Positions 1,141-54,130 of a stretch of 64,000 nucleotides of DNA are shown here, one piece after another. Made by a program: the position numbers and the translations under genes. Position 1 is the stretch's first letter. Every line of letters begins with the position of its first letter. The stretch comes from Dicyema japonicum (lineage: Eukaryota > Animalia > Dicyemida), in the NCBI GenBank assembly GCA_011109175.1, contig RDEW01000001.1:1316360-1380359 (forward strand). The letters are read 5' to 3'. Under the pieces are notes generated by a model. That model was not told the origin of the DNA, made no database searches, and saw nothing but the letters and a program-made list of their open reading frames with translations.

Positions 1141-1441
1141 TATTTATTAACCCCGGATACACCGAGAAAGAAGTTAAAGTAAACTACTAATTAAGTGTAT
1201 CCAGTTTCCACTTCTACAGAAGCAGAGTCCATCCGGAATCAGCATAAAAGGTAAGACGTCCACTACATGCAGTTGTGGAAACCCCTCCAGTGGAGTGGGG
1301 AAGAGCAAATGATCCTTTTTCGTGCCGGCCTGGCACTGGGCGTCACCTAGACAGGTGGATCATATGACGCCACTCTAATAGGAAGAGAAAAGAGGAACAG
1401 ACAAGCAAGCAGAAAACTTCAACCAAGCAGCACCACATGGC
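1141..1441 (-). mobile_element. Short non-autonomous retro-element, family A copy A1 (pseudoknot module 1309-1371)
   Basis: Reverse complement is highly similar to 3819-4099 and ends in ACTTAATTAG...TTAATAAATA. Confidence 0.85.
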
Positions 1442-2654
1442 GCTACGCGGATATAGGCCAATCTCAAATTCAAAATTTTGGACCTTTTTTGACTTTTTGG
1501 AAGTGTGACAGGTATTTACATAAATTTATAAATTATTAATTAATTAAAAATAAATTAAATAATTAAAAAACAAATAAAATTTTAAATCATTGATCGCTAT
1601 TCACACGGTTTGAATTAATTTGGTTTGCTATCAAACATAACATTTAGTGTTAACTAAAAGTCGTAAAAATCTGGAATGTTAAACACTTTGTGATTAAAAT
1701 AAATTTAAATACAAGTCACTGTCAAGAAATATACCAAGGAATGAAAATCCCCAAACATGGAAATAATAAAAGGAAGAAAAATTTAAAATCAAGGTAATAA
1801 TCCTTAAATTGACTAACAGCAAGGCAATTTCAACGTGATTGAAAATAATCGATGCATTAGTATTTAAAGCAACAAATTATATAAAACAGTATTGGACTGT
1901 ACTGCATAAATATTTATGTGGAAAATATCGGAAATTAAAAGGATCGATTCCATACAAATAAACTAATTTGTCGAATATCACTCATATACCTGAGGATAGA
2001 CGTTGTTAAACATTAATGCCGAGATTTGAGCTGAAATTAATAGTAATTTCCAGTTTTGATCGAATATATAATCAAATTCATCAATGTATTATTATGCATT
2101 GATTTTCTATGTGATGGTGTCCAACACGCCTCGTTGAACTATAATGCCGGGATGTTGAGTAGACCAGGCCTAATCCCATATAAATTAATAAGCATCATTC
2201 ACTCAGTTTAATATCACTCAAATATTAACATAGTTGTACTTCCAACATTGTTAATCTCGGTACAAGTCGCATTGTTACCCCCATTCATGTTTGCCTAACA
2301 TTTAATGTGTATAATTGCATAATTACCGCGAATACATCACTCAAATATTAGCATTCCGTATGTAATGTTGTTTGACATGTTTGTTGAACTATAATGTATG
2401 GATTATTTAATATGACGGATCCAATTTTAAATTTGGCACTCATCAGTTCAATATTACACATTGATTCTGTAATGTTGCTTAGATCCCTGTTAAATTGTAA
2501 TGTTGGGACAGCTGAGTAGGAGTTAATTTTTTTCAATTCCATATAAATTAATAGACATCATTCAATAAGTTTAATATCACTCCAATATTAAACAAATTTA
2601 CGTACATGTGATTTGACGCTTCGTTTACATTGCGTGTCAATTCCATGTTAGTTA

Positions 2655-2760
2655 AATAAGATTGGAATAGCCATACTCCGAGGGAACTCGCTCGCAATCC
2701 ACGCAGCAGGCTTCCTCAACTGACATTTGTTTAATTGTTAAAAAAATTATTTTATTAAAA
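2655..2760. repeat. Dispersed duplicate of 7585-7690
   Basis: Near-identical attggaat(a/g)gccatactccg...gcaggcttcctcaactgacatttgtttaattgttaaaaaaa in both places. The minus strand starts ATG TCA GTT GAG GAA GCC TGC (MSVEEAC). Confidence 0.8.
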
Positions 2761-3818
2761 AAATAAAAATATTGATTAAAAAATTCTAGAATATTCTTTC
2801 TTGTTTTTGTTGAACACGTAGACAGTCATAAACCAGCTACGTATAATTTGAAATATTCATCCAAATTCCCTACACAAATATCTCAATTTATTTCAACATC
2901 CGAAAACTTGGTAATACCCTTCTTCAGTTTTGTAATTCCTTTAAAATTCAAACTACTCCAGGCTCTGTTTTTAGCATAAATTTATTAATTTCACTTCTGC
3001 ATCCCATGAGATCGAATCCTGAATATTTTGATCCGTAAGAATTTCCCACATTGTTCTTGTCTAATTTTTACGTAAAAATTCCAATTTATATCCTCACGAT
3101 TTGACGCTTCACTAATATTCGTCCACATAAATGAGTCATATCATTCAACAAGTAAAAATAGCTTAAATTTGTATATTAATCTTTCACAATCTCCAATTTA
3201 TCCATTCTGAGAAAATTATACTTGGATCCTGTAATATAGACCAATGCTGTTCCATTAGTATGTCGATGCGGGTTTAGCCACTTATAATGGTTGGCTTGGA
3301 CCCCTGGGACCTCGTTGGACTACCATGTTCATCGGTTTGTTTACCAGCGGACCGCCCGTTTGGACCCCAACCACGACATGTGAAATGGCTGAAGAGAGGG
3401 ACTTGTGAAGTGTCCAGGCTATAGAGACTGTTAAATAACTCTAACATAGATAATTTTATTAACATAACAAACTCGTTACTAATTAAGAACTAATTAAAAA
3501 GGGAGAAGCCAACGAGTTTGTCTTGGTTGATGGGATCTGGTATAACGAGACACCATAATGTCTCTTCTTTGAATTATTGACCCCTTTCATCCAACAAGAA
3601 TTATTTTTTTCAAGTGGTGCAATATTTCCTCAATGGATCTTGCACGTCTCTTATCACTAGGCGGTAATTTAGACTTTAATCAAGTCCATATGCCAGTTTA
3701 ATAGTATTTCTCTTCGATTTATTGAGAAGCTCTACAAGAGTACTTCTCTCATCACTTTCAAACCATCCTTAAAAGCCATAAATCAAGAATGGTTCTATAC
3801 AAGGAATTGATATATTTT

Positions 3819-4099
3819 GCCACGTGTGCTGCGTTGTTAATTGGTTTAATTTTTCTGCTTGCTTGTCTGTTCCTCTCTCTTTCTAATAGAGTGGCGTCAT
3901 GTGATCCACCTGTCTAGGTGACGCCCAGTGCCAGGCCGGCATGAAAAAGGATCATTTGCTCCACTGGAGGGGTTTCCACAACTGCATGTAATGGACGTCT
4001 TACCTTTATGCTGATTCCGGATGGACTCTGTTTCTGTAGAAGTGGAAACTGGATGCACTTAATTAGTTGGTTATCGGTGTTAATAAATAATAATAATAA
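3819..4099 (+). mobile_element. Short non-autonomous retro-element, family A copy A2 (module 3893-3955)
   Basis: Starts GCCACGTG, contains GGCGTC...GACGCC and TGATCC...GGATCA, and ends CACTTAATTAG...(TAA)n. Confidence 0.85.
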
Positions 4100-4249
4100 G
4101 CTGTATACACATAAAGAAAAGTTTCCGGACTCAATTGAAAACTTAGAAGCGATTTCAATCGCCGTAGCTTTTTTCCTCTTTTTTTGATATAATTAATGAA
4201 GGAACCTTCGAGTTCACAACACCAAGATATTGTAACTGTTCCATGCATT

Positions 4250-5640
4250 TGATCGCTCCAGTATCAATACGAATCTTTGATTTATTCTTGTAATTCACAA
4301 TTCATGAAGCAGTACACTTTTCCAGAGATAAGGATGAACCCTTATCTCGGCACCAACATTTAATTTTATCAATGTGGGTTGAAATACGTTTCCAGGAAAT
4401 CGATATATTAATACTAAGATCGAGCAAAAGAATATCATCGGCATAAATTAGCATTTTCGAATTTAGGTGTTCAAACTTCGGGATGTCACATAATTGAATA
4501 AGAGGGGACTTAAGACAGACCCTTGTGGAACCCGTCTTTCTAACAAAATTTTCTCTACCAGAAAGAAAATCTTTCATCAACACTAGAGCCTTGCTCCCAA
4601 CATTAAAATTTGACAAAGTTTTCAACAACCCAGCATGCCAACGCTATCAAAAGCCTTTGATATGTCTATACATACGGCCGTAAGACATTCTCTATTCTTC
4701 TTAGCAACACATATAAAATTTGATAATATTGACAAACAATCTTCAGTCTCTCTAGTGGAGCTAAAACCCACTGTTCATCAAGAAGAAAATTGTTGTCTTA
4801 ACGTATTTTGATAATCTGTTGAAAATGATTTTTTCCATAATTTTCGAGATACTTTTCGATATAATTCTCGAATATTATCCAACTTCATAGAAATATAAGA
4901 ATTAAAATGAGCCCAATCTATTCTGTTGATATTATATCCAAGAAATATTTCTTCTTCAAAAACGGATCCAGTTCGCAACTCCAAAGTTTGAGGTAAGTGA
5001 TCACTCCCTATATCATTTTTGACATAGGGCAGACCGCTCAATAAAGCGAGGTTTTCTTGCATAACGAAAATTCCCAATCTATCAGCACTCGTTGTTGGAA
5101 GTGATTAAGTTTTTTAGACGTAAAATCTTCTAAATTTTCTGATTCCATTATTTCCAATAAACATTTGCCGTCAGAATTAGTTTTACACAACCATATGCAA
5201 TATTTTTTGCATTGCAATCTCCACAAGGATTGGGTTTGCATTATTAGCGAAAAAATCTTTTATAATCCTTGAATAATTCCTTAATCTTTTGGATTAAATT
5301 CCACCAATTGTTACCAACCAATGGAAGTGTACAAATAATACATAATTCTCTTATAATTCTTGGCAATCGCGTTTTAATACTCTTTTTGTACAAAATAGAG
5401 GTTCTGTACCAGCTATAGCACCGGGACGCCATGGAATATCAATCGAATTATAACCCGGGATATTAATAATTCCAGGTTTTTTCATCTTCGTTTCATTAAT
5501 AATTAATGCATCTATCTCAACAGCGCCGGTAAGGGCTACCAGCTCCACAGCCCGCTTCCTAAGAGAGCGGGCATTAACCAGGGTAATCCTTGTTATATCT
5601 GATTTATTTGGTGGCTGTCCTCTCTTCTTAGGAGCGCCAC
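4250..5640 (-). mobile_element. Decayed, internally deleted non-RTE LINE (AP endonuclease plus RT; I/CR1/L2-like)
   Basis: TLVNARSL...IINET (APE N-terminus), IGSDHLP (APE C-terminus), IDWAHF, DISKAFD, MKDFLSGR, IYADDILL. Confidence 0.85.
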
Positions 5641-5769
5641 CAGGCCAAGTAAAATCTTGGCACCCTTCTTCGTTCTTGTCATGTTTTTAATATTTTTAGA
5701 TAATTGTTCAACAATATTATAAAAACGTTCCTCTTTCTGAATATTTCTGTCTACTGTGGGCTCTTCCTG

Positions 5770-6550
5770 TCCCGTGACCAGGATCTCCTAAAAGCCTCAG
5801 AAAGAGTTCAAAAACAACTACACGTGATTCAAAATTGGTTAATCTCCAACAGACTTGATATATCTCCTGAGAAGTCCTCCACATCCTATTTACTCAGACA
5901 AACGTCTTGGAAGAATGACCGTTGATTTATTTATCTACCAAACTAAAATACCTTTTACGAAGAAATTGAAAATCTTAGGAGTCGCCTTTGACACGCACAT
6001 GACCTTCTCCCCTCATGTCGAATATATCTCCGGAACCTGCTCAAGAAAGCTTGGTTTGATCAAATCTATTTGTGGTGGCATCAGAACCCTTTCCCAACAT
6101 TGAAACTACTACACAAACAATTCATTGAGCCATCTATCAGCTACGCCTGTGCGTCTTGGGGAATCACCTATCCTGGACTAACAAACAGAAAATCAGTGAT
6201 GTTCAGTCCTATCAGCTACAATATCGGCAAGCTCGTGAGAGGTCAGTCTCACACCCACCTCTCTGGAAGACCTTATCGACAAAATGGGAAGGGATTCGCC
6301 GCTCTGTGCCGAAAAATCCAACTTCCACAATGCTCTAATGGATTGGGTCTTACCTAGAAGACTTTACATCACCCCTCTTGTATTTCTTTCAAAACCCTCC
6401 CGTCTTCAGAGAAGCTGTGTTGGATATCGGAAGGTCCACCGGAAAAAGATGAGAGACCTGATGGATGCGGCCGGGATCACCTAATTAGTTTAATACAATT
6501 AAATTAACTATTGGTGTTCTTGGGTTAAATAATAATAAATAATAATTCGG
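5770..6550 (+). mobile_element. 5'-truncated non-RTE LINE (RT C-terminus and 3' end)
   Basis: QNWLISNRLDISPEKS, LKILGVAFDTHMTFSPHV, FIEPSISYACASWG. The ORF ends AGIT* at TAATTAG, followed by an (A/TAA)-rich tail. Confidence 0.85.
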
Positions 6551-7266
6551 ATCTTTTGGATTCGCTGATTGACTAATCTAACTCCTGATTTCTCTTTAAT
6601 AAAGTTGTTGTTTAGTATTTCGATATTACCATTTATTCGATGGAATTTGATGCTTGTGAAATTTTATGTACTGCATGAGTAAACCATGCAGGTCCACTAT
6701 TTAATAGAATTTACAAAAATACTGAATTTCTAATTTTGTAAATTTATTTTTACAAGAAAATTCAGATTTATATTGTGGGGTTTCTATGCTCCACTGATAT
6801 TTATGTCTCCACAAATGAACCGTAACAGTCGAAAGGTTAAAATACTAGAAAATGCTTTGATTTTTCTGTTTTATATTTTTTTATAATCTTCTAATTCATC
6901 CCCACTAAGTAATTGAAGAAATCTATACTCTACAATCTGATCATCAAATATTGAGTAACATTGCTTCCCAAAGTATGTTAACCATTTTTATTCCAGATTT
7001 CAATCCTGTTTATAATATTCAAGTTCAACAAAAATTTTGAGATATAGAAGAAATGTTTTGTCATAAAAAACTCGGATAATGTCATTTAAAGTGATTTAAG
7101 AGCCTTTCTTGGTTGTAGTTTAACTTGGATGGCGAAATTCCTAATTATATAGGCGTGATTTGATGCTTCAGTGAAATTTTTTGTACTGCACGAATAAACC
7201 ATGCAGGTCCATTATTTAATTAACAAATATACTTAATTTTTAAGTTTTTAGCTAATCACATATTTT

Positions 7267-7465
7267 GGCCGGGTGGCGCAGTGTGAAAGTTGTCGGGCAA
7301 GAAGCCTGAAGGTCGCTATTTAGAATCCCGATTCTGCACATTTCGGTCGAAGGTTCCACGCATCAATATGCTTTGGCTTGACGAGTGACGTGAACTTCAC
7401 TGCGGAACCGGATCGTCTATTAAGGACCCAAGAAAAAGAAAAACAAAGAAGTGAAGAGCATTCTT
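7267..7465 (+). mobile_element. tRNA-derived SINE, family C copy C1
   Basis: Head GGCCGGGTGGCGCAGTG has an A-box-like and a decayed B-box-like motif. Body TTGACGAGTGAC...CACTGCGGAA...GTCT is shared with 8485, 27418, 29270 and 31212. Confidence 0.75.
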
Positions 7466-8484: not shown

Positions 8485-8688
8485 AATAGCATCATAATAG
8501 CTTGGTTTGACGAGTGACGCCGTCATCAGTGAATACTCACTGCGGAACTGGATTGTCTAGAAAGGACACTCACACAAGAAAAAGAAAAAAAAAGAAGTGA
8601 AGATCATTCCTTGGTTCTACGATTAGTTAAAATTAACTGTTCTTTACTTAAATAAAGTGTGTGTCCTGCCTATGCGGAGCTATAAAAT
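8485..8688 (+). mobile_element. Family C SINE, headless copy C2
   Basis: Near-identical over ~180 nt to the reverse complement of 27418-27600. Confidence 0.8.
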
Positions 8689-8689
8689 A

Positions 8690-8960
8690 CTATGGCTCTC
8701 GTGAAAAGGCTTTATTATTATTAATAGCTTGGTGTACCTCTTGGGATCCTACGCACTTTTTGAATTTGTTACAGATGCTCGCGTGATACAAGCTGTGGGC
8801 GCGCTTTACTAAAAAGACCCTCGAAGGAAATGAATTCATTACGGAGTCGTAAAACCTTTGTAGAGTTTTGGTACCTGTGGGGTGGAAGTCTTCTATTTTC
8901 TTAAATTCGTTTAGTTCTTCATGCAGCATAGTCGTAGCTGATGTTGGGCACAATAAATCG
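8690..8960 (-). mobile_element. Probable hAT transposase C-terminal (dimerisation domain) relic
   Basis: FYDSVMNSFPSRVFLVKRAHSL resembles the hAT FW...FPxLxxLAxxxLS pattern. Weak match. Confidence 0.35.
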
Positions 8961-9425: not shown

Positions 9426-11615
9426 ATGATACCATGTGAGACAGACTGCACTCATAAGGAGTGCAAGGACTTATACTTATCTTACCACTCCCAGTACGTC
9501 AAATCACAGTAATATTTAAAAATTAAATTCTAGCCCTAACACGGTTTATGGTAACAGAGGATATATCTGCGCAAATTGCTCTAACATGCGTGCCAGAAGA
9601 GACGAAAAATACATTTTTGGGCATTCTAAGGCTCATTTTTCCCTTAAAACCCTAATTATGTCGACCTTTGAGAAAAATATCGACTTTATTCCTGTTAGTG
9701 GGTTAAACCCTCTGAATAATGTAGAAATTGGAAAATATTTCGAAATTCTAAAATAGTATGCTTCAAATTATACTTTTAGTTTATATTCCTGCGACGCCGA
9801 CAAATATGTTATAATTTCCGACTTTTCCTTATTTATGAGCCACTGTGTCAGCAACGAAACAATCGAAGTGCAAACACGTCACATTGTGTGGAATATTTTA
9901 TCCGAAATTTCCCGCCAACCTACTGTTTGAATATAGGTTAACCACTCTATAATAGATTATCGACGTTCGTAAAATTTGTGAATTACTTACCCAAGGCTCT
10001 CAGGACACTACTACTGGGTATTTTCCTGATCCAGGAAACTCAAATCCAGGGACCTTTGTTGAATTGCTTATGGAAGGTAACCCAACGGTTGTCTGTCCGT
10101 AATTATTTCAGGAAGCCGTAAAGTCCGCCATTTCCATGAACCGATGGGATTTGGCTATGGGTCTGAGCATCTGTTTGGACCTGGAATCCGTGATTCCGCA
10201 GTTTTGCCAGAAAGTCGCTCTAGAAAATGAATTTTTTGCTCTATTTCTTAGCTACTTGTCCAACAATGTGGTTTCATCACCAGTATGCTTATCGCTAATA
10301 TCCAGGGGACGTCGGACTGGCAACTCCACGTGGCTGTCTTACTCACGATCCTCCCATTTAACCGAGATCTGTCTGTTCAGTCCATTATAAATATCCTCAC
10401 CATGCTTAGTAAGTCGTAAACTGCAACGTAGTCGATCGTAACCTGATCTATGGCTCACTTGTGTGTCTGTTGGTCTTGTTTGCCTGTGCACGTGTCCCCC
10501 TGGCTGATCTGATGTCGAATTTCATGCCATTTACTCGGTCTATCTTGTTTATTATTGAAGGACTGGATTAAGTGGGGAGATATTGATGCTACTTTTATTG
10601 GTGGACATTCTGAGTGGAGAAAACGTCCAAAATGTGGTGGTAGTTTTTTGATTAAATTGCAGGAGCTGAAGGCACAGTTTGTGTCCCTCTGGCCTCTTCT
10701 GGACTCTTTCAGGATGCGGTAGAGCTTGCTGAGTCTGTCCTGCTGGCTAGCCTTGATAAAAAGAACCCCCCGTTTGTCGTCTTTCAGTTATATGATGTAT
10801 GGGTTGTGGTAATATGCTGATTTATATGACCCTCGGAGAACTTGCTGAGAAAAGCAGCAGTTTTTACAGAATTTACGATTATATGCTCAAAGTCTTCACA
10901 TCACTTCGGTGTAAGGACAAAGGGCATAAAATTGATGAAAGTGAGTCGTTTGGGAAGACAGATTCCGCTTCTTTTGACGCAAACACGGAAAATGTCTCGA
11001 TTTTAACGGAACCTTATCAGAATGTGCGTGGTGATATTGGTAACCCAAATTTTGTACCCAAAATCCTACCAGATGGTGGTTGTTCGTTACCACGTGTCAC
11101 TTCACAAGAAGATCCCAACAGCTTTATGTCAATTATCTGCACACTATTCCACCGATTATCATCAAAACACAACCGTCAGTGGAAACAACGGAAATTTCTC
11201 CTCCAACTGCTGCCCTTCCTGTAAAATTATCTAATGAAAACTCTAACGGTGATCTCCCAGAGGAGACAAAATCAGTCACGAATAATCCCCCAAAACAGTC
11301 CTCAATTAAAACGGTGGAGAAGAAGGATACTTTTTTTAAGAGTGCGCTGAATATGATTAGCAGTGCGTTTAGGAAATCCAATAAGGTGGAGTTTGACTGA
11401 TTCTAGGGGTCCATGTATTGGGATGAATCTTCTCAGCGGTGGATAGACCCCAACGAGTCGGACGATGGGGGAAATGATATCCCACTACCGCCTACGTTAG
11501 GAATAAGGGACCCAAATGGAATGAGTCGACCTGTTGTTAGAAGGGATGATTGTAAATGTGGGCTGTTTGTGTCATTGTAGTGCATTATGATGTATTGGCT
11601 GATAAACACGTGTGA
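9426..11615 (+). CDS. SEC16: Compact SEC16 (COPII scaffold), multi-exon
   Basis: FVELLMEG..EAVKSAISMNRWDLAMGL, SDWQLHVAVLL, LASSGLFQDAVELAE (central conserved domain) and MYWDESSQRWIDPNE...PLPP (C-terminal motif), joined by short GT-AG introns. Confidence 0.75.
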
Positions 11616-11699
11616 TGGGTCTTACTATTAATTATCTATTATTTTTTAAATTGAATTCAACGATTGGTAGTAAGTGTGTTGGTGAAACATTTGTGTTTA

Positions 11700-14600
11700 T
11701 TTTGTAAGGTGAATATAAATCAGAGCTAATTATATGGCGAGAAGTCAACATAGTGTTCGAATCTCTAAGATGTAGAATAAAGGTCTCATTCAGCTTGGAT
11801 TGGGGTCAATGCAAGAAACACTTCCCTGTGGGATACTAATTTTAGTCTCCTTTAAAATATTTTTGTTGAGATGCTAATAACACTGTTTCTTGTATTGCAC
11901 ATGCTTTGGCATAACCATTATGGCAAGACGATGAGTGCTAATAATAAGCGCATTTATTATTTCCGCCAAACTGTAGGATCCAGTAAACGTACAAAATCAT
12001 GCAATCCATTTCAAGAGGCAGACAAACAGAAACTAATCCAAGGAAGCAAAAGGACTCCTCAAATATTTGTAGACCGCGAACTGCTTCAGTAAATAAGAAA
12101 CTAAAGAGACCCATTGAATAAAAGATCACAAGTATTATGAGGAAATATTAAAATCCTATAATAAAATAAAGAGCATACTTCTATTTTATACCCACATTCA
12201 ACCAATTTCTCCATGACCTGATGTGCCTTACCTCTCACAGACACGTGTCCACTTAGGTAGCATGCAACGATATTTGGAATGAGCATATCAGGCAACTTGG
12301 AATGAATATCCCCATCAAATATGGTGGTTAAACCTTCCAACGTCAATTCAACCACTGAATTTGACTTAGAAGTGAGACTCTAAAGTTGATAAAAATAATT
12401 CTCACAGCACGAACTACACTACCAATTGCTTCAATCTCTTCAGAACTCTCAAGATGTCTTATAAACACATTTATAATTTCAAAGAAAGACTAGGATACAT
12501 TCCTCAGAAAATTCAGCCACCAAACTACCTCATCTATGGAACTGACTGAAGTGACATAATCAACAATTTTCCCGACATGAGACTTGATTCTACAATAATT
12601 TGTCATCAAAACCCAAAAAAGAGCATGAAATGAAACTTTACATGACCAGACCCTAAGATGGTTATAAATCACAACTTAAGAGATATGTCTCAACGGCGGA
12701 ATCAAAGTCATCGTCTGATATGAATGAAAATAATAGTCCCAGGCATTTTGCTGCATGTAGACAATAGACATGGTTTGGATCCGATTCATACACAAGAAGA
12801 TTCTCAGTTATAAAGGACAAAGCATCAAATGAAAATGTTTGCCTTGAATGTTCAAAAACATTGCAGAGTCCCGCTATTATCGAAGCCCTGGAAGTGAGGA
12901 TGATTACTATACCTTATACTCGCATTCGTCTGATCGAGATATGCTCCCAAAAGTCGGTCAGCATAAGCTGAAGGAGTTGAATCGACGCAAACAACGAGAC
13001 CAATACATTCAGCCGCTAAATCCCTTATTTTGATATTCACATCGACGATAGCATTACAAAGGGTCACACGAAAAAGTGAAATAAATGGTTTAAGACTTTC
13101 CCGAGCACGTGATATAAACTCCTTTAGTAACGTTAAAATATTGATTTTGGCTGTTAAGGACTGATTGTGAATCATCGACCGCACCAAAACACCAACAAGA
13201 GTCATGGCCGATGTATTTAAGGCGCCTGGTGGACATTTCATTACAATCGACAGTAAAGCACCAATACAGTCTTCTTTATTTTCTACACCGTGGACTAAAC
13301 ATGCTATTTCGAAAAGAGGGACAAAACAAAGTATCCCCTAAAGATGACTTTATTAAAGAGATACCTTTTCAGGTAACCCAAATCCGGTATATTTTGGGAT
13401 GTGATCGACCCCAGCACTTTGTCGATTATTCCCCTAATCGTCTTAAAGGATTGGTTGAAGAGATCAGGATCCACGTTCTATGGTATAAACGAACAGTAAC
13501 CTTTATGAAGGTATCCATGGAATTCCAGGCTTCTTCATATACCACCATCTCCCCGTCGCATAAAAGCGTGAATATGAGTTGGAAGAACTCCATAGAAAAT
13601 TGTTCTGGATCGAATGCTTAGACAAAACCAATCTTGAAAGAAATCGGGCACCAGCAACGCGTTCGATAACCCCCGAGTTGAGCATTTCAGAAACAATGAA
13701 TCTAACCACGTGGAGACAACTTTGTTTGTCCTCAATAGCACTAATAAAATTGTCATACTTATAAATTTCCTAAAATTATTACTTTTTAAACCGTCAAAAA
13801 CGTGTCACTAGACTTCAAATCTCCCAAAATTGCCCCCATAATTTCCCTACTCTTGGAACTGATATTAATTGGGATATGCTCGGATAGTTCTAAGAGTCCG
13901 TTCAAGTCAACCCCCCTTTGACACAACTAGAATGACAATAATAATAGACCAGAGGAATGACAGATTGAGGGAAAATGTTGTGCTTGATTTGGCAGATAGA
14001 TGCAATAGCAGACATGAGAGGAGAATAGAAGTCACCCTCCTGTATGATAATAAAACAGTCAAACCGCTCGATTAACCAAAAACGGCAATAAAACGTCCAA
14101 GGCGTCATTTCCGACTGAGTTGTAAAGCTGTGTGAAGGCCTCAGTAGTTTTCTGTCGTACATCTACTTCCTCATCAACAAACCCATGCAATATAACATCA
14201 AGACTTCTACGTAAGGCACGAATAGCCTAAAAGACTGAATGACAAACCAAACCTGTTCTTTGCTTAAAGAAGAGAGAGCATATCCAACCGCGTATTGAAG
14301 TGCTGCTCTAAATCTGGTGTCTCCATCGAACATCAGATGGAAGATACTAGAACAAATATCCTCATCCTTCCGAAAAGTGTCCGTAAGGGCAGTCAAACAG
14401 GCCTTAATACCATATACTACATACATTCGTCATATGGAGCATATCATCGGAAGCAATGACTTCAAAAACAAAGCGACATAAATGAATATTAACAAATGTC
14501 GCAATGCTGCTATCAAAGATGAGTCTCCACACCCTCAAGGAAGCTTGAGCGACATGAGGACAAGAATCGAAACGATTAATGAAAATGATGGACATTACCC

Positions 14601-27380: not shown

Positions 27381-27417
27381 CCGTTCATACTAATAATAAT
27401 AACGTCCTTTTCAATAT

Positions 27418-27845: not shown

Positions 27846-27849
27846 TCGC

Positions 27850-28889: not shown

Positions 28890-29130
28890 TGGCCTACTCC
28901 ACTGGTGAAAATTCCCATTATGAAGACTCTTGAAGTGATGTACTTGACGGTAGGACGTGTGATGGTAATGTAGTAGAGTGGATATACTTCTCCACTTTTC
29001 TTCGGAAGCCCACAATGGAATATTAAAGTATTTATTTGGTCTTTAAAAGCAGACGTTCTCCCTTGGGTTCCTTCCTCGGATTAATTAATTATGACTGTGT
29101 GCTGGGCTTAGCAAAAATTATAAGCCTGGG
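28890..29130 (+). mobile_element. LINE 3'-end fragment homologous to 30600-31030 (-) and 34940-35200 (+)
   Basis: Shared cattatgaa...gtaggacgtgtgatg...ctccact...aagcagacgttctccctt blocks. Confidence 0.65.
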
Positions 29131-30599: not shown

Positions 30600-31030
30600 T
30601 CATTCTTAATAAATGCACTCGAGTTAAGTCCAGCACAAATATTCACAACTAATTAAGGGAGAACGTCTGCTTGTGCTGACCAAATCCAACCTCCAATAGT
30701 CCATTACAGGGTTCCACTTCCGAAGAGAGGTGGAGAAGTAGGTCTGCCCCTTCCATTTTTCATCACACGTACTACCGTCGCGGACATCATTTCATTCTTA
30801 GGTGGAAGAGTTTTCATAATGGTAACCTTCACCGTTTAGTTTGTCAGGAGAAGGTAGAAGAATCCATTTTAACAGCTGTGTCGAGCCAGAAGGACTCGTC
30901 GACTCACAGATGAGTTTCGGTTGACAAGATGTGACCTTCACTGAAAAGTCCATCCTATCGATTCGAACACGACATGTTATAACGTTATGTTCAGCCAAAA
31001 ATGGCAGAGTAATTACAAATAAAATATCGT
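30600..31030 (-). mobile_element. LINE 3'-end fragment with TAATTAG terminus
   Basis: Reverse complement matches 34940-35200 and 28890-29130, and ends CCTTAATTAG. Confidence 0.7.
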
Positions 31031-31034: not shown

Positions 31035-31150
31035 AACCCTTATATGATCCACCTGTCTCGAGTAAACCCCAGTCGAAAATAATAATTTACCATCTCTACT
31101 TCATTGAGGGGGATCACTTTCTATCCTTTCGATGGTTCTGGATGGAAATA
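31035..31150 (+). mobile_element. Degenerate family A copy A5 (P4 arm lost)
   Basis: atgatccacctgtctc...cca plus downstream ttctatcctttcgatggttctggatgga, matching A4 and A2. Confidence 0.55.
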
Positions 31151-31211
31151 TAAATAATTAAAAAAATCATTAGATAACTGGAACTTGAGGAACATTGAGA
31201 GTTAATATTCC

Positions 31212-31430
31212 TTGGTTGAGGTGGTGACGTGTCTGGGATTGACGAGTGACCCCATCATCAGTGATTCATCACTGAGGAAACGGATTGTCTCAGGGACTCC
31301 CAGGCAAGCAAAAAGAAAGTAAGACGTTAGGAACAACTTCGATGTCTTGGATTAATTAGGATAACAGTTCTTTACTTTGTAAGTTCTCCCTAAGCTGAGA
31401 TGAGTAATTATTATTATTAACCCAAGAACA
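31212..31430 (+). mobile_element. Family C body preceded by an RTE 5'-end sequence instead of a tRNA head (C5)
   Basis: TGAGGTGGTGACGTG (31217-31231) is identical to the 5' end of the RTE at 48573-48587 (-), and is followed by the TTGACGAGTGAC...GGATTGTCT body. Confidence 0.6.
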
Positions 31431-34939: not shown

Positions 34940-35200
34940 AGCATCAATTTTTTTCAACGAAGGTCTTTCTGGCTCGACACAACTGTTAAAACAAATTCTC
35001 CTACCTTCTCCCTGACAAACTCAACGGTGAAGGTTACCATTATGAAAGCTCTCCCGCCTAAGAATGAAGTGATATCCGCAACAGTAGGACGTGTGATGAA
35101 AACAGAAGAGGGTAGACCTACTCTCCACTTCTCTTCATTAATGGAACCCTATATTGGACTATTGGAGGATGGATTAGGTCATGGCTATATAAAATAAAGC
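34940..35200 (+). mobile_element. LINE 3'-region fragment
   Basis: Homologous to 30600-31030 (-). Confidence 0.65.
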
Positions 35201-39400: not shown

Positions 39401-41004
39401 TGAACTTAATATTTCCGACATTGACGGAGAGATCATTCACAGAATTTGTGACACTGAAATTGTGACGGGTTAAATGTCTGTTTAAGCTCAGGAAATGGTT
39501 TACTAGCACAAGTCGTTCCCCTCTTGTTGGAGATTTGTCGAAGTTCTGATTTTAGTGACGATTCATTGATGATTGCTGCTTGTACTACTCTGGGGAAGTT
39601 CATGTATTTGAGGTAAGCTGACTTTGTGATGTAAGCTCTCAATTATGTGCCACGAACATTCAGTTGTTGGTAACTTTGATGGATCGTTCTCCTGTGTATG
39701 TTGTCAGGTCCAACCTTGTCATAGTCGTCGGAGATTTGGCATCTCGACATCCCAATATAATTGAGCCATGGATTATTTACGTCTACAAGAGGTTGACTGT
39801 CTAATTATTAGTAGGTTGGAGGATAAGGAGGTCAAAGTGAGGCGAACTGCCGTGCTGGTTCTCTCTCGACTTGTCTTAAACGAGATTGTTAAGGCCAAGA
39901 TCAGTGAGTGCCATGTCCACGTCTGTTGTTGACTCTGACACAAGATTGTTAGAGACTCAAAGGCTTTCTTTTACGAATTGTCATTTAAGCGTCTATCAAT
40001 ATTTAAAATATTATTAAATTTTTTACTAATTTATTTTCTAATTTTTTTTTAATATTATGCGAGCATGTACCTAATATGATATAAACTGGCACTATAGGTC
40101 ACATGGAAAATTCTGTTGTGGACTTATGCGACATAACTGCGACCACTTCGACAAANGCCATGTCCACGTCTGTTGTTGACTCTGACAACAAGATTGTTAG
40201 AGACTCAAAGGCTTTCTTTTACGAATTGTCCTTAAAGGTTGTTTATATGCTTATGGTAGGGAAATATCTTATATAATGTATTGCCGGATATTATAAGCCG
40301 TCTAATGGATGACAAGCAAGTCAATGCAGCTGACTTTGACACAATTATGACGTTGTTTTATCCATTATGCTTAGTTTTCTCTTTTCCCTGATCACTAAGA
40401 ACGTACAAAACGAGAATTTGGTCGAAAAACTGTGCTATCGTTTTAGAACGGCGACGTTTGCTTAGTGTATAACCGTAGTGAGGCTGACCAGGTCAAAAAA
40501 CTGGCCATGTGTGTTTCCAAGTTAACTTTTACTGAGCGTTGTCTGTCCAAACTGCAGGATAATATTCACTGTTTTTTGCAATCACTTGAACGACGCTGAA
40601 ATCTACAATTATTTTTGTATTGTCCTTAATAAGGCTGCAAAGTCAATAAAAAGTGACTCTAAGGTAATCTGTGGTCTAAGTGAAGGAATTGGTGGATGAA
40701 CTTCAGCGACAATTTCTGACTTTCCACCAAAAGAATGTTGAAGAGAATATAAGTCGGGAACAAATCAAACTAGATACTCCTAAAAAGACTCCTCAAAAAT
40801 ATAAGAAGACTTATAATAACAGAAATGTCGTCTTTCAAAGTGATAATGACAGCGAGGACATTGAGAATTTTGTGGCCGACCCCCCTGTTGCTAGTCCAGC
40901 AGGTTTATGTACTTATAATAGTATTAGTCGTTAATTCTCCATTTTTGAACAGATCGAGGATTGGTCGATCCAACGTTGTTAACATTAGTTCAGATTCTGA
41001 TTAA
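36452..41004 (+). CDS. NCAPD2: Condensin I subunit CAP-D2/Cnd1; 3' end approximate
   Basis: FDIPLRREDL, LRSAILG, AHMHDVNAFVR, GRLYDKSLLVRKRSIQLL..FLKNNPF, HPNIIEPW, GNILYNVLPDIISRL. Interrupted by a duplication and an N at 39910-40230. Confidence 0.92.
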
Positions 41005-41639
41005 TTTTGTTTTCCTTACCCAGTTTTCTCTACTTTTTTTAGTTTTATTATTCTGTCACGATAAGATCCCTAGTCATGATGATCACTGATGAGATAAATT
41101 CAAGAATTAGGGGGTTGCTTCACTGTGCGACATCCATAAAGTTATATTTAAATAGTAATGAAAAGTGGCGCAAAAGTTAGTGTGGTGCTATGTGGGTACA
41201 TGAATTGAAAGATTATTTGTTTGATTCTTCCCTTTTGGTTCCAGGGAGCTTGTATTTGTTAGCGTACGTCATGAAGTTCACCATCTATGGTGACGACATA
41301 TATAATCCTAATTATATCCAAGAAGAACCATTAGTCAAACCATCCAAAATAGTTCCCCTGTACGGCATTTCCTTTAAGTCAGGACATGCGAAGACTGCTG
41401 ATTGAGGCAGGGATCATCTGAATTTTTTCATTCTGGATACGACGGTGTTTTATAGTTCAATAACTTTAAATAAAAATGATAAACTTGTTGAAATGCTTAA
41501 TAGACAAATGATGCAATAAAAGTTGTTTTTGCAATTACAAGTTTGTCTATACGTTGCACGGCTGATCTTTTTGAGATTTGATAGAAAATTCGCCATTGAT
41601 ATATTCTATATTTTTTGGTTGAGCTGTGACGTGGCTCTA

Positions 41640-44195: not shown

Positions 44196-44654
44196 TCGTT
44201 TTCATTCATCCAATTATTAAAATGATTCTTAAATGCCTGTATTATCCCTCGGTCACATGGCTAAATTAGGAAGTTGTGTTTTTTGGAAAAAAATATTACG
44301 TCGACGTTTGAATATTGGGAAAAAACAGCATGACAAGTTGTATTGTCAATTAATAATGCTATTTTTTTCTTTCCTCCCTCCAATTCCTCGTTAAATCGAA
44401 GATAACCAATTTTCAAAAAATATTTTTTTGTCATCCAGGCTTTTTAAAATTAATTCTTTTTAAAGTTATTCCTTACCAGGTTAGTTTTAAAATTATTGAT
44501 AAATAAATTTGGTAAAACAGGTTAGAATAAATAAATAATAAATCAAAAATTATAGAAAAATATTAATGAATCGTTTATGATAGTTAGGGAGAACTAAGTT
44601 AAAAAAGTTAAAATTTAATAACAGTAAATAAATAATCATTAAAATGATTTTTAA

Positions 44655-47600
44655 CTTATTATTATTATTTAAGCACTTCACAAGAGCCATACTAATTATA
44701 GCCCCGCATGTGCAGCAAAAGAAACAAGGTTAGATGTCATCCTTTTCCATGCTCCCCTGTTCCTAGCCAAGGCTCTCATGCTGTCCAGGTCGTCGGCATT
44801 TGTTAGTTTTTTTTATACTGACCAGGTCTTTTTGTAAGACTATTGGCAGTGTTGTTCTTGGTCTTCCCGATAGCGGCCTTCTTGACTAACATAGTATGTT
44901 TCCATAGATATGTTCGGTGGGGAAGTTAATTCCATCCTCAGCACGTGTCCGAAGAGCCTCCATCGGGATTCCAGTACTTCTAAGCTGATAGGTCTAGTGC
45001 TGCATCTCTTATATAAAGCATTCCTAGATATTCTCGTAGGCCAAGTAGTTCCTGTTATTTTTCTCAGCTGACCTCTGTGGAACGAGTCTAGTTTTTCATA
45101 TCCGCTGATGAGGTCGCCCAAGTTCCAGCGTTATATAAAAGTACGGGTTTTATGAATGAGTCGTATAGTAGGATTCTCATTTTCGTGTCGATGCCTTTTT
45201 GATTGAGCCATAAATTCTTCAGTTTATATAACGCAGCATTGGCTAGAGTTTTCCTACGTAAAATATCTTCGCTATCTCCCATAAGTGAACCGAGTTTCTT
45301 TACTTGTCGCCACTTCTCTTCTAGGACGTTACTCATCCTTCTTATCTCTGTGAGTTCTGTTTTTCTCTGTTCACAGTAAGAAACCATTTCCCTAGTACAT
45401 CTGGTGCTTTTTCTAATAGGTTTTCCAGGACCTCTTTGTCTTCAGAAATTAGGTCTACATCGTCCGCGTAGATTACTTCTTCCGTCTTTCCTTGGTATGA
45501 CGGTCTAAGTTCCCTCATAGCGGCTTCCAAATAAATTGTGAATAGTAGAGGAGAAAGAGAGTCTCCTTGTGGAATGCCCGTATTTGTTTCAAATTTTCTT
45601 GAATAGGTTTTTCCGACTCTCACAAGGAGCTCAGTGTTAGAAAGTAGAATTCAGATCATCCTTAGACTCGATTCATCAAGAAATCCGCCAGTACCCCCAT
45701 TAATTTGTTCCTGTTAACCGTATCAAAAGCTCTTGATAGATCAATATTGGTGGCGTTACGGTATCTTTGATATGTTGCACACCTCCATCTGTGACTCCAG
45801 ACCGCATCAGCTGTGGATCTCCCTTCTCGAAAACCACTTTGACTATCTGGTAGGTATTTGTAAGCAGGTCCTTTTATTCGTTCAAGCACAATGTTTGCCA
45901 AGACTTTGCGTAATGAATTTAGTAGTATGATGGGTCGCAAATTTTCGAGCGGTCCTCTGTTTTTGTTAGTTTTTTGTATGGGGATTAGTAGTCCCGTACC
46001 CAGAGGTAGAGTTGAGTTAGTTGAAAACATTTCATTTAGTAATGCAGCGATTTTTTCAAAAAGGAGGTCAGGGCCGTATTTCAGTAGTTCTGGGTTTATC
46101 GCATCTGGTCCGGGGCTTCTGTTATTCTTGAGTTTTCGGCAGGCCGTTTTGATTTCCTCGGCCGTGATTGGTATCTTAAGGGGTCTTGGCCTTCCATCAA
46201 ATGGGTGGATTTCTATGGTTTTGATGTTGAAAAGCTTCTCAAAGTGAGCCGCGATGGCTTCAGTTTGTTCTTTGGTGTTCAGTATCAGCTTACCGTTCTC
46301 GTCTTTTATGGTTAGTCGACTTCGGTTTGTTCGCCGCAGCAAACGGGCAGCGACGTACACCTGTGCGTTGTCTTTCACTTTGTTTACTTCTTCTATACAG
46401 GAGGCTATTTCTTCTATGAAAAGCTTCTTGTTCAGACCCTTTATTTTTCTTCTGACACGTTGTCTTTCGCCTTGAAGGGCTTTTATCGCATTAGTGTCAG
46501 TGGCATTTGATTTTCTCATATTTATTTCTTTTAGACTTTTCGCAAGCTCAGGAACATCTGGATGAATAGCCTTCAGGTGCATTTTACTATTCTCCCTTTT
46601 GCCAAGACATGCTTCAGCAGCTTCGTTGATGGTGTCCTTTGTGCGTTTCCAGGCGTCTTCTAGCGTGGTATCCACCAATACGTCCTGCAAATTAGTCTGA
46701 ATGTATTGTTGATATCTCTCAGTAGTCTCCGGTTGAGAAATCAGCCTTTCAGTCGCGTAGTCGCCTCTGATTTTCTCAAATTCGTGATTTTTTCATTCTG
46801 TATTTAATGGCATGTTTTTTCAGGGTGAAGGTCGCAATAACCATCTTGTGGTCGCTGACAGTCGTCGAATCTTCATATGAACGTGCGTTTACTATACCAT
46901 TTCAGGTTTAAAGTGGGTCTTACCAAAAGCAAAGTGGTACTTACCAAAAGCAAAGTGGTACTTACCAAAAGCAAATTGGTACTTACCATAAGCAAAGTGG
47001 TACTTGTAGGATATAGACGCGTAATATTTTATCAGTGGCCCCTCTTATTGACTGGTCAGTGAAGTATGAACCCCATGAGTGACCACAATCTAATATTTTT
47101 GGAGTTCAAAACGAGGTCACGGATAAAAGGACAATACCCAACGATAACAAACTCAGCCTTGCGAATTGGAGAGGATTCAAAGAATACGTCGATAATTGTA
47201 TTGGACTATTAAATTTCCTCACTTTTCCCTCCATCGAACAATTAGTGAAATGGTTCAACTCCATTATAAACGCTGCGAAAAAGAAGTACATTCAACACAA
47301 CGACGAAACATCTGATCAGAGAACGAAATAATCTAAAGATGGTAAAATCGCCAACAGAAAAGAACATCAGGAAAATACGAGAGCAGAACACAGAGATCGA
47401 CAACAACATAAAGACAGAAAATGCAAATAGATGGACGAGACTATCGAAGGCTCTCTACAAAAACCCCCCAATGCAGAGAGTATGGATGTGGATCTAAAAC
47501 ACCAAAAGATCCACCCCAGAGAGAAAAGTCGACTCTACATAAAACCAGACACACTGATAAAATATTACGCGTCTATATCCTACAAGTACCACTTTGATTA

Positions 47601-48590
47601 TGGTAAGTACCAATTTGCTTTGGTAAGTTCCACTTTGCTTTTGGTAAGTACCACTTTGCTTTTGGTAAGTTCCACTTTGCTTTTGGTAAGTACCACTTTG
47701 CTTTTGGTAAGTTCCACTTTGCTTTTGGTAAGAACCACTTTGCTTTTGGTAAGACCCACTTTGCTTTTGGTAAGACCCACTTTAAACCTGAAATGGTATA
47801 GAAGGTGTTTGTCATTAGCCCGGCATATGACATAATCGATTTGGTTGTATATTGGGACCAGCTTTCCTTCTGAGTTCCTTCGCTTCCCCATCCACGTAGT
47901 TTTGTGGCAGGCAGGATGCGTAAATGCAGTATTGCATAGGAAAAGGTTGTTTGCCATACAAAAGTGACCAAGTATTGTCCAGGGTAAATTTCTTATTCCA
48001 CGTCCATGTTCTCCCAAGAAAACATCATCCGGGTTATTTTTCATCCCGACTTTTGCATTCAAATCACCAGCAATGAGTATTAGTGATGACGACTCATATT
48101 CGTTGTACGTCCGTAACAGTGTTGAATAGAATAGTTCTGTCGGATCTTTCGCTACTCTCCCGCAGTGTGGCGCATAAACATTTACAATTGTCAGAAAGCT
48201 CTTCGAAGGAGGTAAGTCGTTTAGCCGGATTTGTATAACACAGATCCTGTCATTCACACTCCATATACGGTGGACTGCACTTGTCAACTTTGAGTGGATG
48301 GCAAATCCAAGTTCATAATGTTTTGAGTCGCTCGGCTGACATATAATTCGATATTCGCCAAAGTTCTCATCAAGGCTACAAGTAACTTTCGTCTCTTGTA
48401 GGCACCCAATAGATACGTCGTATCTCTCCAGGTCATCACAGAGAATCTTCCTCGACCAGGTCGTAGATAAGCCTCTAGCATTGAACGTAAGGACTTTTAG
48501 ACGAGATGCATCGCTTTGTATCCATTGCCTTTTAGACATTTTTCTCAATTGCGATCCAATCAAGAAACGAGGCACGTCACCACCTCACCA
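44655..48590 (-). mobile_element. Near full-length RTE-like LINE interrupted by a foldback element
   Basis: LTFNARGL, CLQETK, YAPH, GDLNAKVG, NQIDYV, SPGPDAI, QSGFREGRS, DLSRAFD, GIPQGDSLSPLLF, YADD. 3' end TAATTAG...(TAA)n. Confidence 0.95.
46895..47798. mobile_element. 904-bp foldback/MITE-like TIR element with TA target duplication and 21-bp subterminal arrays
   Basis: TACCATTTCAGG.../...CCTGAAATGGTA termini flanked by TA (46893-46894 and 47799-47800). Arms 46895-47037 and 47552-47798 carry 4 and 9 copies of the cttaccaaaagcaaagtggta-type unit. Confidence 0.92.
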
Positions 48591-48724
48591 AAAAAAAAAC
48601 TATATTTTATTATAATGTATATTAAACAAAATTATTAGGTAAAAAAAGTTAAAATTTAATTTTAAATTTAATTTATTAATTTTTTAAATTAACTATGAAT
48701 AATAATATTTTGCCACTAAAATTT

Positions 48725-49570: not shown

Positions 49571-49865
49571 TAATGCACAGTACAAACTCAGACTGTTCTA
49601 CCGAATGAAAAAAGTCGGATAAATCTTCTGTGCTTGGGGATTGTTTCCGCTTCGTACCAATTGCATGTGAGACTTCGGTGTGGCCAGGACTGTCACCAGA
49701 GGTATTCTCCAAAAAATTAGAAACGCAATCTCGCCAAGAGTGAAGGATTTCTCAGGTGCGCCTTAGTTACTATACGCCTCGAATACCACCGTCTAGGACA
49801 AGACATCTAGACGTTTGTCAACTAGTGCCAAATAGATACTTGATTCAAGATTTCTCTTCCTTCCT

Positions 49866-50095
49866 TCTGGTGGCGTCATTGAATCCGCCTTACTCAGAAG
49901 ACGCCCAATGCCTGGCCGGCATTCAAAGAATCCATCTATTCATTCCACTGGGAGACAATTTCGCCCTGGCAACGAGTTCTGGAATAGACCTCAACTTTGC
50001 GACAACGCCGTCGGGATCACTGAGCTTGAGTGAAGGTTCTGCTGGAATGCGTCAGGATAAAGGAATTAGTTGATTTTACCGTCTCTAGAATAATT
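49866..50095 (+). mobile_element. Family B short element copy B1 (module 49872-49934)
   Basis: GGCGTC...GACGCC CA ATGCC-TGGCC-GGCAT TCAAA. Body shared with 52141-52350; ends GAATTAG. Confidence 0.75.
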
Positions 50096-50300
50096 TAATG
50101 CCGTGAGTATCCTCGAAATGAGGGTCCATTGAAGTATAACTACAAGCAGACGAGAACATTGATCTTATTTAAGCAAAGTTCTCCTACAACGAGAGTGAAG
50201 ACAAAAACGGAAATATTTAGCTGCCTAGAGGACCAAATCAAGCCATCTTTTAACAAAAAATCGGCCTAAAACACAAAAATAAAAAGAAACAACTAAAATA

Positions 50301-52022: not shown

Positions 52023-52140
52023 GTGAATTATTTAAATATTTTGATATATTTATTTAAAAATAATTTAAATATAATTTTTTATTTTAATTACTTAGTTTTA
52101 TTATTCCTTAATATAATTGAATATATTTTGAACAGACATA

Positions 52141-52350
52141 CTGGTGTCATCGGACTCGCCTAATTCTGGAGACGCCCAATGCCTGACATTCAAAAGATCC
52201 ATCTTTTCATTCCACCAGGAGATCATTTCCTTCCATAGCCACGAGTTCTTGCTAGACCTCAGCTTTGCGGACAATGTCCTATATGATGGCTCTATGCGTC
52301 AGAATAACGGGATTAGTTAGTTTTGTTTTACCATTGGTCTTTGGAATAAT
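52141..52350 (+). mobile_element. Family B short element copy B2
   Basis: GGTGTC...GACGCC CA ATGCC...CAAAA GATCC. Similar to B1 along its length. Confidence 0.7.
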
Positions 52351-52949
52351 TTTATTTACTACCGTTTACAATCTAAATGCAGGTGTAAGTCAATAAGCCT
52401 GGAGATAATGATGTCTCGCTGGCAACTACTCTACTATATCCTGTGGATGGAGAACATTCCTATCGAACAGTGCTTTAATAATAGACTACTACCGGTACCT
52501 ACTTGTTCGAAAGGTTCCTTTCTGACCTTTGCTTCTTTAAAAGGTTTTATCTGAACTATCAAACTCGGGAGACGCTATTTACTGTCATGCCCAAAAACAC
52601 TAAATCAATATATAAAAAATCTAAGATGTATGCTCTACAATTCAAAACTGAATTCTAAATTCGGAATGATCTGGTGTTTTCCCTGTGCAATAAAATAGGC
52701 GATCTATCAAAGAAAATAACATTGACTTTCGTTCAAACATCAACGATGCATGAGTATTTTTATATTTTTGAAAGACCCTTTCAATCACAGGATCTCCTTT
52801 CATTCACTCATCAAGTGGACCTGGTAACCTTAAGGATCCAAAAGAAAATTGGAATTCTCAAGGCCTTACGCACTCCCTAACAGGAAGTGTTACAAAACCG
52901 ATGTCTCGGAATATAGTAGAGATCGTCGAAAAGACGCCCACATCGTTAC

Positions 52950-53650
52950 TACAGGGAACACTAAACGTCCCCCAATCATGGAATACCTCACGGAACGTCA
53001 CCAAGACTTCTCAAAATGGCAAACTATTCTAAACATCCCCTCGACTGGAAGTCAAACTATATCTTCTTGGATTCGATCAGTTGGTCGAAGAATCAAGCAT
53101 AAAAAACTAAATTACATAAAGCCAGTGGCATGCATGGCTCGGGAAGTCTGGAAGCGACTGAGTGTTGTATTCCCAAGAACGCTAATAAACAACGAGAATG
53201 GAACAAACTTTTATGCTCAAAGATCATAGACAAGATAAAAAATGAGCTTGATCAGCATCGTCTGGATTGTCTGGCTTCTGCATCGACGAACGAGAGTGGA
53301 GCCTGGTTCAGAGCATTTGCCATGCATCTCACTTGGGACACTATTAGATGGCAACGCGACGAGGATTGGGGTTTCCGTCCGCTTCGAAATAGATGTTCGC
53401 GCGATCCATCGCTAAAATGCCTCCCTCCAACCTTGTTATGACAGCAACTAACTAGGCTCTGCTTCGGAAAAGGCTGAGATCTAAAGATGTCTTGGTGGAC
53501 AGTTCATTTTTGAACCAGTCGCCGTGGAAACGTCAGGAATCATAGGAAGGAGGTCACTGGTCCTGCTAAACAGAATCGGATTGCTCACGCGAAGAAAAAA
53601 TGATAGAGAGAAAGAGGTGGCTCTTCAGCGCATTTCCTTGCAAATCGTGA
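52950..53650 (+). mobile_element. 3' fragment of a CRE-like non-LTR retrotransposon (restriction-like endonuclease type)
   Basis: ESGAWFRA, LDGNATRIGVSVRF, FIFEPVAVETSGIIG. Confidence 0.65.
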
Positions 53651-53824
53651 GACAAAAATGCAAAAAACTCTATGATTATGAGCTATAACAAATAACTGAT
53701 AATTTTTGTTTAAAAATTTTAACTGATTGCTCTGGTTTTTGCTGGTCTGGGACGGAACTATGGGATAACTCAATCTACTATTCTAAATAATAGAATTGTG
53801 TGAAATTAGGACATGAAAATTGAT

Positions 53825-54130
53825 GGCACGTGTGAGATTGGACATAGCCTTATTTTTGGTTGCAAAATCATGCATTTAATCAATTTTATTACCAATTATA
53901 CATTTTACTCCAATTCTCGTCCGAATGGAGAATCAATAATCCTCTCAGACGAGTCATGTGATCCGTCTGTCTCATGTGACATCCAACGCCAGGGTGGCAC
54001 GAAAGGGGGTCATATGCTCTTCCTCACTCTAACTGAAGGGTCCACACAACGTTCTATTCCCTTTCGTTGGTTCTGGGTGGACTTTTGTGATGTTTATGCA
54101 TCTGCTACCATGTGACCTGAACACATTTAG
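53825..54130 (+). mobile_element. Diverged family A copy A4 (module 53951-54013)
   Basis: GCACGTG..GATTGG at the 5' end; GAGTC ATG TGATCC...GACATC CA...GGCAC GAAAG GGGGTCAT; downstream body similar to A1/A2. Confidence 0.7.

Follow-up and report, generated by a model that had tools for sequence, protein, structure and literature searches.

A short retroposon with an internal ribozyme-type module

The window analysed here is a stretch of 64,000 nt of the Dicyema japonicum genome (contig RDEW01000001.1, positions 1,316,360–1,380,359). It carries several copies of a non-autonomous retroposon of ~310 nt, built from a 5′ head of 80–115 nt, a compact module of 63–68 bases (counted from P1 to P2′), a variable body, and an 80–90 nt copy of the 3′ end of a long interspersed nuclear element (LINE) that closes with an A/T-rich tail. 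The module can be drawn in the helix order seen in the ribozyme of hepatitis delta virus (HDV), and its copies were grouped into families A, B, C and E. Six copies came out of a profile search across the window, together with a half-module at 27731–27762(−) and a remnant at 31040–31086(+). A covariance model built on the six copies, using P1, P3 and P4 only and run unfiltered, found a diverged seventh copy, E1. The first-pass annotation of this DNA had placed the six modules exactly, the helix strands it quoted are in the sequence, and the relic it put near 31045 is located at 31040–31086; its set of copies was incomplete, because 41264–41331 (with a paralog at 61613–61921) and 27731–27762 had been missed. 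The elements, and the LINE fragments to which their tails are related, are as follows:

1141–1447 (−): A1, full-length family A element, with head 1372–1447, module 1309–1371 (P1 of 6 bp, P2 of 7 bp, P3 of 3 bp, P4 of 5 bp, a 2 bp P1.1 of UG with CA, and the joiner (C)GAAAAA) and LINE-like 3′ part 1141–1260
3820–4099 (+): A2, family A, truncated at its 5′ side within the head by alignment with A1; module 3893–3955, with C50 changed to T at a CpG
27388–27850 (−): composite element with ~22 nt of head, the complete A-type module A3 (27763–27825), a C-type half-module of P4, J4/2 and P2′ (27731–27762), a C-like body and another LINE-type tail
31040–31377 (+): relic, with a module remnant (31040–31086) that has no P1 5′ strand and a tail in common with 8501–8649
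41165–41474 (+): E1 element, with head 41165–41263 (99 nt, starting GTGGCGC), module 41264–41331 (weak covariance-model match at 41267–41331, E = 0.055) and LINE-like tail
49755–50099 (+): C1 element with head (~115 nt); module 49872–49934, P1 and P4 intact, P2 5/7, P3 decayed
52142–52356 (+): C2, a headless element in which homology to C1 begins at G1−1; module 52143–52201, with a 4 nt loss in P4
53951 to ~54175 (+): B1 element, from its module (53951–54013) onwards; P1 of 5 bp with a bulge, P2 intact with two wobbles, P3 weak, P4 shifted to 4 bp
61613–61921 (+): E2, a decayed paralog of E1 with the P1 3′ strand deleted
5704–6545 (+): 3′ fragment of the partner-type LINE, with open reading frame (ORF) pieces of the reverse transcriptase (RT) C-terminus, the 3′ untranslated region and a (TAA/TAAA)n tail
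55870–56030 (+): a further short 3′ piece of this type of LINE

Fold and compensatory changes

The order P1-P2-P3-P1′-P1.1-P4-P2′ can be drawn in every copy, with all five helices in A, B and E, and with P1, P4 and a partial P2 in C. In a register test on the six copies, 85.9% of cells were paired, compared with 28–47% when the partner strands were slid, which bears out the HDV-like helix order proposed earlier. The nested part of the A1 module (P1, P3 and P4) has an energy of −18.5 kcal/mol, and a strict HDV-type descriptor matches the A copies and gives 0.15 matches per shuffled window. The same six copies had been described as covarying, a description that they do not sustain: two pairs are changed on both sides, and 200/500 shuffles equal that number. 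The six copies do not establish covariation because three of them are near-identical.

The E1 module parses into a P1 of 6 bp with one bulged A, J1/2 AU, a P2 of 4 bp, a 2 nt bulge and 3 bp, P3 ACC/GGU, L3 AUCUAU, J1/4 AU, a P4 of seven A-U pairs and the joiner CCAAGAA. Relative to family A, nine pairs are altered on both sides and pairing is retained at all nine: P1 pair 2 (G-C to U-A), P2 pairs 12-60 and 14-58, four P4 pairs, and both P1.1 pairs (U-A to A-U and G-C to U-A). None of these nine pairs was aligned or used by the covariance model that found E1, and the chance of a P2 as good as that of E1 is 0.003. E2 retains P2 (6/7) and the P4 stem, and its insertion falls in the P4 loop. In the model-fitted alignment, which omits the P4, the P1.1 and the first two P1 pairs of E1, four pairs are changed on both sides (44/500 shuffles reach this) and the covariation score is reached by 22/500. 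The HDV-type helix order is a real fold, each diverged family being represented by one or two copies, and the compensatory changes show that this structure is under selection in master copies from several families.

The three common module variants of family A, at position 9 (consensus G, giving G·U), position 29 (A/G, 45%, U·G) and position 50 (C/U, 22%, at a CpG, giving G·U), all preserve pairing. Variants are equally dense in the module, the head and the body, the pattern that neutral decay of copies would produce. Two further pairings were considered and rejected. For an alternative P1.1, in which the CU of L3 pairs with AG and G36 is freed, E1 offers no partner; pairing of the head with P4 and J4/2 in the minimum-energy fold was not significant (z = −0.76).

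One LINE ORF of the window, looked up in an assembly index, had no entry there. A degenerate P1-to-P4 pattern matched 101 metagenome-contig loci, which were set aside as chance (0 fit the module profile). In 86 kb of Octopus sinensis loci there was no module, nor an excess of CACGTG. Two weak matches in that species were discarded: one (L102:18246–18292) is antisense in a long ORF, with no Pfam domain of its own, that follows and overlaps the RT ORF, and the other (L104:20303–20372) is a GC hairpin.

Element architecture and LINE-derived tails

A1 and A2 align at 90% identity from ~75 nt upstream of G1, the first base of the module, to ..TTAATAAATA and the A/T-rich tail. TAATTAG, previously taken as the terminal motif, is therefore not the end, as the elements run on for another 30–50 nt. 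Homology had been said to begin ~5 nt upstream of G1; this is correct for the pair at 49872 and 52143, the latter being headless, and incorrect for A1 and A2 with their shared upstream sequence. The heads of A, E and C1 are in fact homologous to one another (A1-E2, z = 5.1; C1-A1, z = 4.8; C1-E weaker, z about 3), and the upstream flank of B1 shows no similarity to any of them. Full-length A and E elements begin with GT(G/A)GCGC directly after putative 8 bp target duplications; E1 is flanked on both sides by AATGA(A/T)AA, and a possible 8 bp duplication at A1 is ATATCC(G/A)C, at 1447–1454 and 1113–1120. The head starts like the module, the two bases before G1 included, with a 14/17 match (1430–1446(−) against 1357–1373(−)) that is reached by 3/5000 shuffles.

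Classical short interspersed nuclear elements (SINEs) have a head derived from tRNA, 5S or 7SL RNA with an RNA polymerase III promoter. No tRNA-derived head was found by ARAGORN, Rfam gave nothing over the head at E ≤ 10, and the head contains T4–T5 runs. Directly before the module lies a pyrimidine-rich tract ending in AG (1372–1400(−), 3860–3892(+), 41225–41250(+) and 49850–49871(+)), which in A, E and C1 resembles a 3′ splice-site signal.

In families A, B, C and E the last 80–90 nt can be aligned, ORF2 stop codon included, to the LINE ends 6400–6545 and 55870–56030. In the LINE at 5704–6545 the ORF ends ..AAGIT, and its stop codon TAA (6482–6484) lies within TAATTAG. From this tail homology the elements are LINE-dependent retroposons, in agreement with the first-pass annotation. 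No LINE 5′ end bearing the head or the module is present within the window. The tail of another LINE, at 44698, has the same TAATTAG...TTAAATAA(TAA)n layout. Retroposon families without the module also carry TAATTAG tails (28884–29064, 30655–30895, 34963–35181 and 3420–3500), and 8504–8726 and 27388–27598 are LINE-type tails of short families that are likewise without it; the composite element at 27388–27850(−) has its tail in common with 8504–8726. Within that element a full A-type module is directly followed by the C-type half-module (27731–27825(−)), a junction that suggests recombination between families or template switching.

Abundance and 5′ ends

Runs that contain the window date from 2017 and 2019; those listed with the element are contigs of unrecorded kind, and none labelled RNA is among them. 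Contigs from four runs of one sample were placed on positions 1050–1550 (28,153 contigs in run X1). Their summed depth is ~4×10^6 over the element and ~340 in the flank, a ratio of ~10^4-fold that is not a calibrated copy number. The module-bearing family is very abundant, as had been proposed, and its copies are truncated to varying extents at the 5′ side. The 3′ end of A1 is marked by piles of loose contig ends at 1139 and 1142. At the 5′ end, depth drops to that of the flank between bins 1441–1457 and 1458–1474, and a head-to-tail joint is seen at 1447>1143. A consensus of loose ends at 1426 indicates that many copies share the same head.

The earlier annotation implied a role like that of such ribozymes in R2 and RTE elements, that of defining the 5′ end. 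The data do not agree with this, as 76 nt (A1), 99 nt (E1) and ~115 nt (C1) precede G1, and 56–69% of the depth continues upstream of it. In run X1, successive 17 nt bins upstream of G1 hold 69, 43, 23, 7 and 3% of the module depth, and the first such bin holds 56–63% in the other three runs. With the module internal, behind a shared head, and with depth continuing upstream, cleavage at G1 does not generate the 5′ ends of A, E and C. Among the best-supported piles of loose ends there was none at G1, although the display threshold of the table could hide a pile of up to ~30% of copies; the 3′ end does have piles.

The catalytic core

The descriptor for active designs fixes a G1-Y pair, a CC/GG P1.1, U..CG in L3 and C-R-R-A in J4/2 (PMC6326823). 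The module departs from it in several places, and the deviations listed in the first-pass annotation were accurate. L3 reads UGUCUA, UGUCUCA or AUCUAU, lacking both the CC and the G, so the U...C-G signature with its reverse-wobble U·G is absent; the first base is U or A, and CU is conserved. When this U·G is replaced in the antigenomic HDV ribozyme, most variants have no activity and the best ones are slowed 232–528-fold (PMC3386971). J1/4 is CA where the descriptor has GG. This was thought to abolish P1.1, but CA pairs with the UG of L3, and in E both pairs are exchanged (AU with AU). P1.1 is thus formed from the first two bases of L3, as UG/CA in A and B and AU/AU in E1, and differs from CC/GG. 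The joiner J4/2 reads CGAA in A and B, only if G36-C50 opens, CAAA in C and CAAG in E1. The closing pair of P4, G36-C50, covaries to A-U in family C, which argues that C50 is probably paired and is not a free catalytic cytosine. Rfam at gathering score gave nothing on the window, and the proposed comparison with its HDV-like models gave no match around A1, B1 or E1, even at E ≤ 10.

Interpretation

We lean towards reading the module as an RNA domain descended from an HDV-type ribozyme: a nested double pseudoknot, internal to a superfamily of ~310 nt non-autonomous retroposons, that is mostly uncleaved and has a structural or protein-binding role. The LINE enzyme would recognise the tail and copy the RNA by target-primed reverse transcription. 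The copied RNA would be mostly uncleaved, so that the module would not be for making the 5′ end, and would rather be a compact domain, taken over from the 5′ region of a LINE, that serves a structural or protein-binding function. Self-cleavage would be weak, partial or lost, because the catalytic signature of L3 and P1.1 is altered. The module may then be described as a conserved domain of HDV-ribozyme type with putative catalysis, and that it still cleaves itself is a tentative proposition. The earlier alternatives, a variant ribozyme or a non-catalytic pseudoknot derived from one, still bracket the answer.

Several observations weigh against a mostly uncleaved domain or favour an active HDV-like ribozyme with a variant core that would cut 5′ of G1 in a fraction of transcripts. 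Its P1.1 would be U-A/G-C or A-U/U-A, from the first two L3 bases, with no guanine in L3; cleaved RNAs would give headless, dead-on-arrival copies and uncleaved RNAs the head-bearing ones. The G1-Y feature of the descriptor is present (as G1-C in families A, C and E), position −1 holds U or C throughout the five families, HDV itself preferring U and then C there (PMC1874588), and the CGAA joiner of A and B, with G36-C50 open, would be the exact C-R-R-A of active ribozymes (PMC6326823). Covariation preserves the 2 bp P1.1, in keeping with selection for a complete active-site architecture, and the unpaired AU of J1/2 and CU of L3 are invariant in 7/7 copies. The ribozymes of L1Tc also depart from the descriptor (PMC3185411, PMC4035085) and are active with a 1 bp P1.1 (PMC3185411). 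C2 alone starts at G1−1, as expected of partial cleavage, and the largest single depth step, 31–44%, falls at G1. A limit on the mostly uncleaved reading alone is that each diverged family is known from only 1–2 copies. Against an active ribozyme, the module departs from the descriptor at five of its eight fixed core bases, the change of G36-C50 to A-U in family C argues for a paired C50, and most copies keep the head; the best-supported piles of loose ends include none at G1, and Rfam has no matching model. Cutting in a fraction of transcripts is on balance a minority possibility. Given the headless C2, the headless flank of B1 and the depth step, partial cleavage at G1 may occur. The fuller proposal, a working HDV-like ribozyme of undescribed core, internal in ~10^4 dicyemid retroposon copies and splitting the head from the LINE-recognised body by partial cleavage, seems rather unlikely.

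Two other explanations were considered. Cleavage could take place at the 5′ terminus of the element if the GGCGCC of the head were a second P1 5′ strand, separated from P2 by a long J1/2; this would set the 5′ end and yet keep the head. The head does repeat the module start (14/17), the element starts a few nt from the pseudo-G1 according to depth and the joint 1447>1143, with the G29 variant (45% of depth) GGCGCC and the P1 3′ strand are fully complementary, and R2 has J1/2 regions of 216–498 nt (PMC3774820). However, the E1 head GGCGCA pairs with GACGAC at only 3/6 positions, E1 has a compensatory pair of its own in the internal P1, the internal strand, being adjacent, should outcompete the head for the 3′ strand, and in A and E the pseudo-G1 comes after 2–4 templated bases. 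Such cleavage is conceivable for family A and has no support in E1; as a general explanation it is the least probable of those weighed here. Scarcely more probable is a fold with no present function, whether a decaying relic or a chance likeness, or conservation at the DNA level, for example as a promoter element. The equal density of variable sites across module, head and body of family A would be in keeping with this, as would the C copies without P3 and part of P2, and the six-copy covariation test was not significant; but the nine double changes between A and E1 all still pair, the E2 insertion spares the stem, and the descriptor finds 0.15 matches per shuffled window.

R2, RTE and L1Tc-type elements, and their short derivatives, are known to carry HDV-like ribozymes at their 5′ ends. 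What is unusual here is that the fold has been retained by compensatory change across several retroposon families, that the module sits behind a conserved head and not at the 5′ terminus, and that the L3 and P1.1 core breaks the search descriptor, whereas the CGAA joiner, given an open G36-C50, is intact. Should the module cut, the class is being sought with too narrow a descriptor, and an active ribozyme with this new core would widen the sequence definition of the HDV-like class; partial cleavage would make it a natural ribozyme that limits, and does not enable, the propagation of its carrier. If the module does not cut, it is a clear example of a ribozyme fold put to new use as a structural domain. 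Repeats make up 49% of the genome according to the Dicyema genome paper, which mentions neither a SINE nor a ribozyme by name (PMC6736024); the present family would be the first retroposons of any dicyemid to be characterised.

Neighbouring features of the window

The LINE with the tail at 44698 occupies 44650–48700(−), has endonuclease and RT ORFs, and is split by a foldback element (46892–47801) with ~114 bp inverted ends and internal repeats in a 21 bp phase. The best named relatives of its RT (45662–46690(−)) are proteins of Octopus sinensis, with 56–61% identity, followed by Elysia with 47–49%. Octopus is a dicyemid host genus, and this likeness is offered solely as a lead to possible host-parasite transfer. 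On O. sinensis contig VCDQ01011424.1 (the source of the first weak match; 1–7409 and 10001–18600), histone genes adjoin LINE RT ORFs.

Three adjacent ORFs at 62198–63697 belong to a gene for an AAA_12 (UPF1-like) helicase. A 22 nt GT..AG intron (63231–63252(−)) must be removed for read-through of the helicase, and without it the ..GFLGDFRRVNVALTRAR.. motif is whole again. Introns as short as this are reported, among animals, from myxobolids and Dicyema japonicum only (PMC13644364). Of the 6 bp palindromes in the window, CACGTG is the one most in excess (32 occurrences, 8 expected), with one in the head of A2 (3821), and the CpG observed/expected ratio is 0.79. Self-comparison of the window showed short tandem or nearby direct repeats of 84–96% identity at 26186–26378, 39910–40237 and 62590–62820.

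Comparison with known systems

The nearest systems are the Pr77 ribozymes of the L1Tc/ingi clade (L1Tc, NARTc, SIDER1/2) and the R2 ribozyme with its short internally deleted elements (SIDEs). Like the Dicyema family, the Pr77 group combines an HDV-type fold in a LINE lineage with short non-autonomous derivatives and has a non-canonical P1.1; some of its derivative copies are well folded yet inactive, and SIDER2 also has a second, internal signature (PMC3185411, PMC4035085). The trypanosomatid ribozyme, however, is the first 77 nt of its element and cuts at +1, whereas the module described here lies behind a head of 80–115 nt. Host, LINE type and sequence are all distinct, and activity of the Dicyema module is putative.

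R2 and its SIDEs likewise have an HDV-like fold in a non-LTR (long terminal repeat) element and short derivatives that keep the LINE 3′ end, and both a long J1/2 and cleavage sites lying upstream have been described there (PMC3414825, PMC3774820). In R2 the sequence of P1.1, P3 and L3 is almost invariant and insertion is at the 28S junction, whereas the core of the module is altered, its insertions are dispersed, and the copy number of the Dicyema family is orders of magnitude higher. With the HDV, CPEB3 and drz ribozymes, as captured by the Webb-Luptak descriptor, the module shares helix order, G1-Y, a 3 bp P3 and, provided G36-C50 opens, the C-R-R-A joiner (PMC6326823); it differs in a P1 of 6 bp in place of 7, an L3 of UGUCUA without the CC and G, CA in place of GG at J1/4, and in matching no Rfam model. 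The twister variant in non-LTR elements of Schistosoma offers a parallel from a parasitic spiralian, in which LINE/SINE amplification has spread a small self-cleaving motif (PMC8501958), but it belongs to another ribozyme class and its cleavage has been demonstrated. The Dicyema family is distinct in the internal position of its module behind a head, in an altered L3 and P1.1 with a covarying substitute P1.1, in its host and in its scale.

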